A stretch of DNA of 64,000 nucleotides, from sequence record MZ443771.1; one strand, given 5' to 3'. The translations under genes were made by a program, and so were the position numbers. The notes beneath the pieces were generated by a model that was not told the origin of the DNA, did not search any database, and saw only the letters and a program-made list of their open reading frames with translations. This document shows positions 16,611 to 20,843 of the stretch, in pieces. Positions within the stretch are counted from its first letter, which is position 1. Each line of letters opens with the position of its first letter.

Positions 16611-17144
16611 ATGGCAAAGTCACTGGGTGTATACATGACGTATATTCTGCGTCATAAACCTCAGGACATTGGCATCGCAATGGACACCCAAGGATGGGTG
16701 TCTGTTCTGGATTTCTTGCAGAAAGCAAAGTACAAAAAGCAAGTGACCAGAGAGATGCTGATCGAAGAAGTAGAAGCGGACGATAAAGGTCGTTTTGAGT
16801 TTAACTCGAACAAGTCCAAGATTCGCTGTGTTCAAGGGCATTCTGTTGAGCACGTCATTCTCAATCTCGAACCTTGGACTGATTGTTCGCCTCTGTATCA
16901 TGGCACCGCAGAGAAGAATGTCGCTGCTATCCAGCATGAAGGTATTCTCCGACGTAAACGCAAGCACGTCCATATCAGCAACGATATCGAAACAGCTCGA
17001 CGTGTTGGACAACGCCACGGTGTACCTGTTGTGTTTCAAATCGACACACAGGCAATGATCACTCACGGTTATAAGTTCTACCGCGCAGAGAACGGAGTCA
17101 TCCTCACCGATCACGTACCGTCGCGCTATATCAGATTGGTGTAA
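16611..17144 (+). CDS. kptA: RNA 2'-phosphotransferase (KptA/Tpt1)
   Basis: ILRH, DDKGRF, IRCVQGHS, LYHGT, RKHVHIS, NGVILTDHVP motifs. Confidence 0.93.
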   Translation: MAKSLGVYMTYILRHKPQDIGIAMDTQGWVSVLDFLQKAKYKKQVTREMLIEEVEADDKGRFEFNSNKSKIRCVQGHSVEHVILNLEPWTDCSPLYHGTAEKNVAAIQHEGILRRKRKHVHISNDIETARRVGQRHGVPVVFQIDTQAMITHGYKFYRAENGVILTDHVPSRYIRLV

Positions 17145-17548: not shown

Positions 17549-17615
17549 GCTCGTTTGTGCTATAATAGAGATGAACGCTAGACACTCGTTTAGCTACTTA
17601 CATGAGGATATGTAT

Positions 17616-19070
17616 ATGAAAAAGATTAAATACACTTTTCGCCTGACTGACCTTGTTCGCATCTCCAAAACTCTGCCTGTAACTATGAAGCATTTCGATG
17701 GTGCAGGAGAAGAAGCCATTGTTGTTGGTCGTCAGAATGAAAAAGACGAGTACGCGTTACACATCAAACATCATGGTTATGTTGCATGGTACCCAGCCGA
17801 GTGCTTGACGCTGATCTCTCACAATAACGGTGAGCTGCTTGATCAGTGGGAAGCAGGTGACTACGGTCGCGATAAGAAGAAGAAACGCAAGATGCCAGAG
17901 GCGCTGCGTAACTTCACTGCTATTCTGCCTGTCACCTGCAACGCTGATTGCTCGTTTTGCCCAGAGAAAGAGATGGAGCAGAAAGCTGCCCAGCAAGAAT
18001 GGCAAGACGGTTTGATTGCTTCGATCAAACGCATGTACAAGAAAACGAAGTTCGACCACGTATCAATCTCTGGTGGCGAACCTACACTGCGCACGAAGTT
18101 CTTGTTTGAGACTATCGACCGCATTCAGAAAGAAACGCCAATCAAGAAAGTAGGCTTGACGTCTAACGGCTTCTTCCTTGAAAAGCAAAACAGCACGTTC
18201 GACTTCTTAGACCGTAACACTACGCCTGAGATGACGAGCAAGCTGTCGCATCTGAATATCAGTATGCACTCGTTCAATCGTGATCTCGCAAACAAGATCA
18301 TGGGCGTGAACTACAAACAGACTCTGGAAGATCTTGTGCGCTTCCGCCGTCAGCTTGGTCGTGAAGTTAGTTTCCACATTAACTTTGTGATCAACGACAA
18401 GACCGGCTCAATCACCGAAGAGTTCAAACGTGCCGCCAACTTCATGCGAGCGAACCCGTTCATCGACATTGTGTTCCGTGTTGACTACAACGATGTTGAA
18501 CTGTCCAAAGCACTGCGCAAATATGCTATGGATTATGCAGAGTGGGAAGAAGAAAGTCGCATCGCCGCTGCTGCTCGTAAGAAATGTAGAATGAAGGAGC
18601 CGAAAGCACCTCACATCGTTCAGAAGTTTGATCGTTTCTTTGGAGGCAGCACTAACGATGAAGCTGAGAGTGCATGGACTACAGGCTGCCCATCATGCTT
18701 CACCCATGCGTCTAACATCGTCAATAACAGTCGCGCATTCTTGAAAGCGTCTTCATACGAACCGAACGACGACGAAGAAGAATACACTGAGCTGGTCTAT
18801 CACATGGACGGCGCTCTGTATTGGGACTGGACTCGTAATGACCCTGTACCAGAACCACGCAGCAAACGTTTCGACTTCGAAATGAAAGAAGAAACTGTCA
18901 CTCAACCAAAAGCTGTTAAGAAACCTAAGAAGGCCAAACCTGTTGCTATGACCAGCAAGCAGAAGAAAGAAGTTGAGCGTGAGTCTGGTGTTGATAGCTG
19001 CAACTATTCATCTCGCTGTGGTTTTGTTGGCGGTAACGGTCGCTGTGGCTTCGGCAGCGGTCTGTGCTAA
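17616..19070 (+). CDS. Radical SAM protein with N-terminal beta-domain and C-terminal Cys/Gly tail
   Basis: CNADCSFC (CxxxCxxC), SISGGEPT, LTSNG, LNISMHS, GCPSC. Confidence 0.88.
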   Translation: MKKIKYTFRLTDLVRISKTLPVTMKHFDGAGEEAIVVGRQNEKDEYALHIKHHGYVAWYPAECLTLISHNNGELLDQWEAGDYGRDKKKKRKMPEALRNFTAILPVTCNADCSFCPEKEMEQKAAQQEWQDGLIASIKRMYKKTKFDHVSISGGEPTLRTKFLFETIDRIQKETPIKKVGLTSNGFFLEKQNSTFDFLDRNTTPEMTSKLSHLNISMHSFNRDLANKIMGVNYKQTLEDLVRFRRQLGREVSFHINFVINDKTGSITEEFKRAANFMRANPFIDIVFRVDYNDVELSKALRKYAMDYAEWEEESRIAAAARKKCRMKEPKAPHIVQKFDRFFGGSTNDEAESAWTTGCPSCFTHASNIVNNSRAFLKASSYEPNDDEEEYTELVYHMDGALYWDWTRNDPVPEPRSKRFDFEMKEETVTQPKAVKKPKKAKPVAMTSKQKKEVERESGVDSCNYSSRCGFVGGNGRCGFGSGLC

Positions 19071-19080
19071 GGACAATCGA

Positions 19081-19440
19081 ATGAAACAACGTACCTTCTA
19101 TTATGACAGCCCGTTCTATTACGGGCTTATCGTGTGGCGCAAGCGTCTGCGCAATGTTGTGCTGATGCTATGCGCAATACTCATCATTCACGGCTGGCAT
19201 GTGCCTGTAGTTGAAAACATGTGGGCATGGACTGGCACTATCTTCGGTATCTTGTTTCTCGTTTGCTACATTAAGATGTGGGAATACGAGCGCATGATTC
19301 TCGAAGCGTGTGGTCCGCTAGATACGCACACTGTTATCGGTGTGTTGAACTTCGAAAGTTTAGAGCGCAAACATGCTGTCTGGTACGAAAAGAAGTTCGG
19401 ACACAAGCCACCTAAAACTAACTCATGGAGTATCGACTAA
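19081..19440 (+). CDS. Small membrane protein
   Basis: Two hydrophobic segments; SD AAGGA. Confidence 0.7.
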   Translation: MKQRTFYYDSPFYYGLIVWRKRLRNVVLMLCAILIIHGWHVPVVENMWAWTGTIFGILFLVCYIKMWEYERMILEACGPLDTHTVIGVLNFESLERKHAVWYEKKFGHKPPKTNSWSID

Positions 19441-20579: not shown

Positions 20580-20843
20580 ATGGCTGTAGGCTTTGTCAAA
20601 GATGATGGCGTCAACGATACCATCGAAACAAACGTGCTGAATGAGATCGACCGCGCTCGTTCAGAACTTCAAGGCGCAGGTTCTGATTACTGCGTCAACC
20701 CTGATTGCGGTGAGAAGATTCCTGTGATGCGTAAACTCGCTATGCCCAATGCGCGTTACTGCATCAACTGTCAGGCAGCGCACGACGGCACTGCTAACGT
20801 CGGCTATAATCGCCGTGGCTCAAAAGATTCTCAACTGAGGTAG
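20580..20843 (+). CDS. ybiI: DksA/TraR-family C4 zinc finger protein, YbiI-like
   Basis: C..PDCGEKIP..R..AMP.ARYCINCQ and terminal GYNRRGSKDSQLR as in enterobacterial YbiI. Confidence 0.9.
   Translation: MAVGFVKDDGVNDTIETNVLNEIDRARSELQGAGSDYCVNPDCGEKIPVMRKLAMPNARYCINCQAAHDGTANVGYNRRGSKDSQLR

Follow-up and report, generated by a model that had tools for sequence, protein, structure and literature searches.

A phage radical SAM protein and its tethered Cys-repeat tail, a candidate fusion of an enzyme and its own peptide substrate

In a window of 64,000 nucleotides (the whole stretch of DNA analysed) from Erwinia phage pEa_SNUABM_20 (MZ443771.1), a 266 kb jumbo phage of the genus Alexandravirus, we investigated a plus-strand gene (17616..19070) that encodes a 484-amino-acid radical S-adenosylmethionine (SAM) protein with a tethered Cys-repeat tail. 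We find that the radical SAM enzyme and a Cys-unit peptide constitute a two-part functional unit, which is usually fused into a single protein, and that the family occurs almost only in phages, which range from T4-like ones to jumbo phages of 260 kb. The reading that we favour, holding it at about even confidence, is that the enzyme and its own peptide substrate are joined in one chain by a linker that is long, basic and disordered. We infer the role of the tail as substrate of its enzyme, since no protease, exporter or RRE (RiPP recognition element, where RiPP denotes a ribosomally synthesised and post-translationally modified peptide) was found and the tail of the related enzyme MoaA is a sensor; the RiPP-like product that a first-pass annotation of this sequence had proposed is a putative one.

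The open reading frame (ORF) closes with a stop codon at 19068-19070, leaving 17616-19067 as its coding part, and its translation is identical to the annotated coding sequence QZE56809.1 ("hypothetical protein"); window positions are obtained by subtracting 201,871 from those of the record. An alternative in-frame ATG at 17571 (17571-17615) would add 15 codons and yield 499 residues, but 17616 is the likely start because all homologues begin at the corresponding MKK/MKN position. Homologues of the 484-residue protein are present in 47 phage records. The ORF, cluster motif, linker and tail all lie where the first-pass annotation had placed them, with the motif CNADCSFC at residues 108-115 and the tail at 18999-19067.

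We modelled the protein with AlphaFold2 using 55 relatives (mean predicted local distance difference test, pLDDT, of 82). The radical SAM core and a C-terminal beta-rich subdomain span residues 97-417 (17904..18866, plus strand), mostly with pLDDT above 90 and supported by Foldseek, and membership of the radical SAM superfamily is established by the Pfam models PF04055 (Radical_SAM; 50.6 bits against a cut-off of 29.5) and PF13353 (Fer4_12; 39.8 bits against 22). The core carries the CX3CX2C motif (C108, C112 and C115; 17937..17960, plus strand), the ligands of the SAM-cleaving [4Fe-4S] cluster, and the subdomain carries a CPSC knuckle (C358 and C361; 18687..18698, plus strand) at the turn of a predicted beta-hairpin (residues 354-365), which is possibly a partial auxiliary metal site; CPxC is also found in nearly all members of the outer family described below. 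Behind the subdomain follow a K/P/E-rich linker (residues 418-461; 18867..18998, plus strand) and the Cys-repeat tail CNYSSRCGFVGGNGRCGFGSGLC (residues 462-484; 18999..19067, plus strand), which consists of three C-x-[Y/F] units and a terminal Cys. Linker and tail together (residues 418-484) have pLDDT below 50 and are predicted to be disordered. Across alignments of 55 and 63 sequences, the only invariant Cys residues are the CX3CX2C triad, the CPxC pair and tail Cys, with C468 being the tail position that is invariant in the 55-sequence alignment.

The Cys repeat of the tail is not expected by chance. Cys accounts for 1.6% of the long plus-strand ORFs of the window and the probability of at least four Cys in a given stretch of 23 residues is 5e-4, while only one of 200,000 shuffles of the protein placed at least three C-x-aromatic units in its last 23 residues; moreover, among 1,351 six-frame segments of the window the tail of the 484-residue protein is the sole C-x-aromatic triple. 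In close phages the tail, including its internal units, is under purifying selection (pN/pS, the ratio of nonsynonymous to synonymous polymorphism, about 0.05-0.25). The 17 phage homologues, which come from five genera infecting Erwinia, Dickeya and Yersinia, all close with two to four C-x-[Y/F] units behind a basic linker of low complexity that cannot itself be aligned. Conservation of the tail in homologues, which the first-pass annotation had named as a check, extends further: a search of 5.8 billion proteins provided 65 close relatives, every one of which has at least two Cys in its C-terminal extension. Around these Cys the preceding residue is Ser, Gly or Arg, the following one is Gly (46%) or Ser (18%), and position +2 is Phe/Tyr (65%) or Gly (14%); the spacing between successive Cys is mostly 4-9 residues (mode 6), with Gly/Ser spacers, and in 41 of the 65 two residues follow the last Cys, which is itself the final residue in 17. 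Separately, we observe in the Alexandra-type homologues (loci L003, L004, L005 and L006) two Cys modules, namely an internal RCSFGPAAPHHCSYDSTG, a second K/P-rich linker and a terminal CGYGxSRCGY, from which it follows that the extension has been remodelled by gain or loss of modules among close phages.

Next, we extended the family by an exhaustive profile search. At E <= 1e-3 it retrieved 4,169 representatives, a number that falls to 513 (clusters at 50% identity) at E <= 1e-10 and to 120 at E <= 1e-30. Beyond 13 close representatives there is an outer family of proteins of 266-485 residues, and at least two Cys are found in the last 30 residues of 114 of its 140 representatives. The usual outer-family end is ...[S/G]CG-x(2-6)-GC at the extreme C-terminus, so that the aromatic residue at +2 is a speciality of the clade of the window protein and the Cys pair is what is invariant throughout the family. 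The linker, ranging from 11 to 106 residues across the family, is not conserved in sequence. Counting Cys per extension in 186 proteins, we found 0-1 in 15, 2 in 74, 3 in 22, 4 in 46, 5 in 14 and 6-10 in 15; thus 171 have at least two (range 2-10), and some tails are tandem arrays of a single unit. Even counts outnumber odd counts in these 171 tails (131 versus 40), and in 152 of them the last Cys lies within two residues of the C-terminus. All genomic contexts inspected are phage-like, including a contig within a Proteus mirabilis assembly.

The peptide is not always part of the enzyme. A subgroup of ~270 residues ends right behind the core, and in most of the tail-less loci that could be read the tail is then encoded by a separate adjacent gene. 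These separate genes encode 26-82 residues and combine a basic or leader-like region with Cys units like those of the fused tails. At L023 the product has 79 residues, among them a stretch rich in Arg/Lys, and closes with two Cys pairs; proteins with Cys units stand beside the tail-less enzyme at L024 (75 residues) and at L025 and L026 (82 residues), a 65-residue peptide is encoded 3 nt downstream at L028, and at L030 the peptide is directly upstream. At L048 and L067, mini-ORFs of 29 and 26 residues start 3 nt past the stop codon of the enzyme gene in another frame, and both are kept although the enzymes share only 61% identity. An N-terminal variant occurs at L027, where a 217-residue upstream protein bears the Cys motif near its N-terminus, and at the tail-less loci L029, L033, L043 and L047 no clear peptide gene was seen. 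As background, 5 of the 388 other ORFs of these loci end in such Cys units under a strict criterion. Among 22 strong IMG/VR loci, 15 are fused, three split and four unclear, and 185,579 species genomes yielded seven strong matches (six fused, one split), all on contigs of metagenome-assembled genomes (six of 5-13 kb and one of 84 kb). Within the window itself no other ORF ends in such a motif, which bears out the earlier statement that no separate precursor gene is evident near the fused enzyme. Fused and split loci alike contain a gene-encoded peptide that is genetically coupled to an enzyme, which is one part of the generic definition of a RiPP system, the other being modification and subsequent release of the peptide. 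Comparison by blastp revealed no conserved partner gene (protease, transporter or RRE) common to distant loci; since no other neighbour is conserved, we take enzyme and peptide to be the whole unit.

We then compared the enzyme with the described radical SAM families. Clustering with a known small-molecule family whose members lack the tail had been named in advance as the finding that would speak against a fusion; we observe that all named families score far under their cut-offs. The best NCBIfam scores are for MoaA models, namely NF001199 (62.3 against a cut-off of 231), TIGR02668 (58.9 against 325) and TIGR02666 (50.1 against 284), and membership of MoaA is rejected on these scores and on the absence of its C-terminal GG motif, the protein ending in ...GSGLC and its relatives in C, C-x-[Y/F] or CG. 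The auxiliary [4Fe-4S] site of MoaA is formed by three Cys in its C-terminal half. In the folded part of the phage protein, C358 and C361 are the sole invariant Cys beyond the SAM motif, and the profile alignment against MoaA spans only core positions 20-178, short of the auxiliary site. Viperin membership is rejected likewise (viperin_w_prok 48.8 against 180; TIGR04278 25.9 against 450), and the earlier remark that CNADCSFC differs from the motif of viperin carries no weight, as it is merely the CX3CX2C of the superfamily. Maturases of RiPPs with SPASM/twitch domains are rejected as well, with 19-35 bits for the PapB, CefB, GggB, WgkB and YydG models against cut-offs of 300-650 (YydG 35 against 300); no SPASM domain was matched by Pfam at E <= 1 in the 484-residue protein, and the enzyme also showed no twitch Cys motif, RRE or leader-binding domain. 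The His-Xaa-Ser maturase HxsC does not fit either (TIGR03977, 55 against 267.9), the repeats being centred on Cys and not of the H-x-S type, and the thymidine-hypermodification radical SAM protein of phage M6 (gp53) is excluded as SPL-like and thus of a different family.

Matches to structures were broader. Sequence searches of the PDB returned MoaA (2e-4) and viperin (1e-3), and the family profile matches viperin, MoaA, YydG/EpeE, anSME and SuiB over core positions 20-178 only. Using a compact relative of 276 residues, Foldseek ranked MoaA closest (template modelling score, TM, 0.61-0.65 over ~275 columns), followed by SuiB, viperin, SkfB and EpeE, and the window protein gave the same list. 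PHROGs gave only weak generic "radical SAM" matches for the 484-residue protein, eight of the 140 outer-family members were scanned and all stay under every curated family cut-off, their source names being generic, and neither Pfam, NCBIfam nor PHROGs holds a distinct entry for a family of radical SAM proteins with a Cys tail. The stand-alone peptides and the tail gave no significant library matches. Literature on the family, on phage RiPPs and on fusions of a radical SAM enzyme with its precursor peptide yielded nothing specific, although subscription journals were mostly outside reach and a prior description is possible.

Taken together, the earlier proposal of either a self-modifying fusion or an unusual metal site is supported in part, the evidence favouring the fusion. 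A fusion of enzyme and substrate is favoured because the units vary in copy number and occur in tandem, because the disordered linker is of very variable length, and because relatives have separate peptide-sized genes with leader-like N-termini. Variable tandem copies, a disordered linker and separate small genes are hallmarks of precursor peptides, and extensions of 2-10 Cys with tandem arrays are in keeping with substrates that have several cores, not with a lone structural or gating element. The presence of the peptide-modifying enzymes SuiB, SkfB, EpeE/YydG and anSME among the nearest structures and profiles further supports the substrate reading, as do the tail being the defining trait of the family, its purifying selection beside an unconserved linker, and the precedent of the borosins for both architectures within one RiPP family. 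In such a mechanism the arm would fold back onto its own enzyme (in cis) or onto an adjacent subunit, bringing a Cys unit to the active site. One or more Cys thiols may there serve, together with the CPxC knuckle, as ligands of an otherwise incomplete auxiliary Fe-S site, a part played by the Cys of the substrate in thioether-forming maturases, and the 5'-deoxyadenosyl radical would abstract a hydrogen at or next to Cys, from Calpha or Cbeta of the Cys or of the following Gly/Ser. The outcome could be a thioether-type cross-link or another Cys-centred modification, introduced unit by unit.

Several observations weigh against a substrate. Neither an RRE nor a SPASM domain, a protease or an exporter was found in the enzyme or at the loci, and overall the closest structures are those of two enzymes with nucleotide substrates, MoaA and viperin. 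In MoaA itself, the flexible C-terminal tail serves in catalysis as a sensor rather than as a substrate, and it also works when added as a separate peptide (PMC12625886). The ending of 152 of the 171 tails within two residues of the last Cys suggests that, as in MoaA, the free C-terminus matters. AlphaFold2 leaves the tail undocked, and the prevalence of even Cys counts (131 versus 40) is also compatible with metal-binding or redox pairs.

These points lead to the strongest alternative, which we consider unlikely though far from negligible: the tail would be a catalytic accessory, either an active-site sensor or gate of the MoaA type or a Cys pair that joins CPxC to complete an auxiliary site for an Fe-S cluster or metal, and the true substrate would be another molecule, for example a nucleotide or a nucleic acid to which the basic linker would bind. 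MoaA (GTP 3',8-cyclase) is the best structural match, with TM ~0.65 across nearly the entire compact domain, and shares with the phage enzymes both a C-terminal subdomain that contains CxxC and, at the C-terminus, a tail that is basic and disordered. Its tail is functionally essential and has a small-residue end, the terminal GG and carboxylate of which bind in the active site and trigger SAM cleavage; it works as a free peptide, an 11-mer being able to replace it, and AlphaFold2 models it with low confidence (PMC12625886). Both the split forms and the low pLDDT of the phage tails match a gating tail of this kind, the commonest Cys numbers are 2 or 4 with the last Cys near the C-terminus, the two invariant extra Cys of the folded part (CPxC) are too few alone for a cluster, and enzymes of RNA and nucleotide metabolism (Tpt1, Thg1, Rnl1, dCMP deaminase and thymidylate synthase) are often nearby. 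Unlike MoaA, however, the phage enzyme ends in Cys units, which are repeated 2-10 times on a linker of up to 106 residues, and its gene is phage-borne and stands alone; the GG end and family score that define MoaA are missing. A gate or ligand would be expected to be single and at a fixed distance, whereas here 2-10 Cys, some in tandem arrays, stand 11-106 residues away on a disordered linker; Cys units also occur at the N-terminus of the 217-residue neighbour (L027) or before a long charged extension, and internal units are under purifying selection. In the predicted model of a member with a linker of only 20 residues the Cys pair is still undocked, with pLDDT of 64 falling to 50, which weakens the case for a fixed structural Cys4 site; the model is not decisive, because the functional tail of MoaA has low pLDDT as well.

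Less probable still is a swinging redox or sulfur-relay arm, in which Cys pairs, alternating between the dithiol and the disulfide (or persulfide) state, would deliver electrons or sulfur to the active site. In class I ribonucleotide reductase, a C-terminal Cys pair acts as such a swinging arm. The excess of even Cys counts, the short spacing (mode 6, mostly 4-9) with Gly/Ser spacers and the flexibility of the arm all fit this alternative, but 40 of the 171 tails have odd counts, the aromatic residue at +2 is conserved in the close clade, a relay has no need of tandem arrays of up to 10 Cys, a separate 26-residue peptide with a leader-like N-terminus is atypical of a redox partner, and no linked thioredoxin-like partner emerged when neighbours were compared across loci. 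Glycyl radical enzymes (GREs) carry the fingerprint RVxG[FWY]x6-8[FL]x4Qx2[IV]x2R with an invariant Gly, the loop of class III ribonucleotide reductase being RVCGYLG, and their activases accept 7-mer peptides (PMC13450708). A tethered mimic of this loop (RCG[Y/F] against RVxG[FWY]), in which an activase-like domain would install a glycyl radical, recalls the [RK]-C-G-[YFW] of 25 of the 65 close relatives, the weak NrdG/PflA profile matches and the presence of PFL-AE among the fold matches, but it is largely refuted on sequence and very improbable, as RVxG[FWY] or the full fingerprint occurs in none of the 65, 22 of them have no Gly after any Cys, Cys rather than Gly is the invariant residue, and activase-family scores are far under cut-offs.

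Among known systems, the closest architectural parallel to an enzyme fused to its substrate is provided by the borosins (OphMA-type and split), in which the enzyme bears its own C-terminal core peptide and relatives encode the two in separate adjacent genes (PMC7878506; 10.1101/2021.12.24.474128). This fused and split arrangement matches that of the phage family, but borosins are SAM-dependent alpha-N-methyltransferases of fungi and bacteria, with hydrophobic cores and release proteases, and have no sequence relationship to the phage proteins; because the enzyme class differs, the likeness is one of analogy and not of membership. The thioether maturases SkfB, CteB and PapB, together with YydG/EpeE, share with the phage enzymes the radical SAM chemistry and Cys/Gly-rich, often repeated cores, SkfB, SuiB and EpeE being structurally near, and the split phage relatives resemble RiPP loci in having adjacent small peptide genes. 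The phage enzyme differs from them in that no SPASM domain, RRE, protease or exporter was detected and in that its putative substrate is usually fused. Viperin and the prokaryotic viperins have a similar barrel and are among the top Foldseek and profile matches, but the similarity covers only the first ~160 core residues and a Cys tail is lacking in viperins.

Much new chemistry comes from peptide-modifying radical SAM enzymes, the substrates of which are hard to predict and nearly always encoded by separate genes. In the present family a candidate substrate lies within the enzyme and the pairing is confirmed by split relatives, and the relationship is therefore testable with a single protein. 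The gene of the window represents a phage-wide system of enzyme and peptide that is uncharacterised, and the chance that the family is a new class of peptide-modifying radical SAM system is real. Were the tail a substrate, the protein would be a radical SAM counterpart to the borosin-type autocatalytic precursor protein and would point to widespread phage-encoded protein modification; were it a gate of the MoaA type, a recently described control of radical initiation would extend to a new and very divergent branch. A bolder proposal, which we put forward tentatively and somewhat short of even confidence, is that this is the first radical SAM family to carry its own substrate, a large phage-restricted class of self-modifying enzymes or enzyme/mini-peptide pairs that would use radical chemistry of an undescribed kind, centred on Cys, to modify repeated C-G/C-x-[Y/F] units, with a product acting during infection.

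The protein also has an N-terminal domain of ~85 residues, predicted as a five-stranded beta-barrel (17616..17870, plus strand; strands within residues 13-68, helix at 72-79, pLDDT ~90) and followed by a KKKKRK hinge (to ~17903, plus strand). This domain is restricted to the Alexandravirus-side clade, being absent from SNUABM_5, SNUABM_7 and all outer-family members, and it matched no Pfam family and gave no significant library match; its alignments in BFVD include two short viral proteins that stand alone (ranks 11 and 50).

Finally, we examined the genomic neighbourhood. When Pfam and PHROGs were applied to the neighbours in the window, only two proteins were recognised: an RNA 2'-phosphotransferase Tpt1/KptA (16611-17144, plus strand; Pfam 5.7e-45), which lies two genes upstream of the radical SAM gene and is syntenic in related jumbo phages, and a downstream DksA/TraR-type C4 zinc-finger protein (20580-20843, plus strand; Pfam 4.9e-9, phrog_54), the position of which is conserved in related phages. 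No molybdenum cofactor genes occur near the radical SAM gene of the window. A small predicted membrane protein of 119 residues (19081..19440, plus strand) is found within two genes of the radical SAM gene in all 17 loci from Erwinia, Dickeya and Yersinia phages, lying upstream and not downstream in SNUABM_5, and is weakly indicated as a candidate partner; it is undetected at distant loci, and the linkage may for that reason be mere shared synteny. In six related loci (L002, 2150-2473; L004, 2139-2474; L005, L009, L012 and L014) an extra ORF of 106-111 residues with a zinc-finger-like CCPYC...HMIEHH pattern stands just upstream of the radical SAM gene, in place of which the window phage has a gap of 67 nt (17549-17615). 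Neighbours at distant loci include Thg1 and phosphatases (L025), a T4-type RNA ligase Rnl1 (L021), thymidylate synthase and dCMP deaminase. The phage contig of the distant member P0059 (L021) also has nearby an anti-Thoeris gene of the Tad3 family and a gene with a faint likeness to QueC (1-630; 1968-2819), which suggests an anti-defence or nucleotide-modification island.

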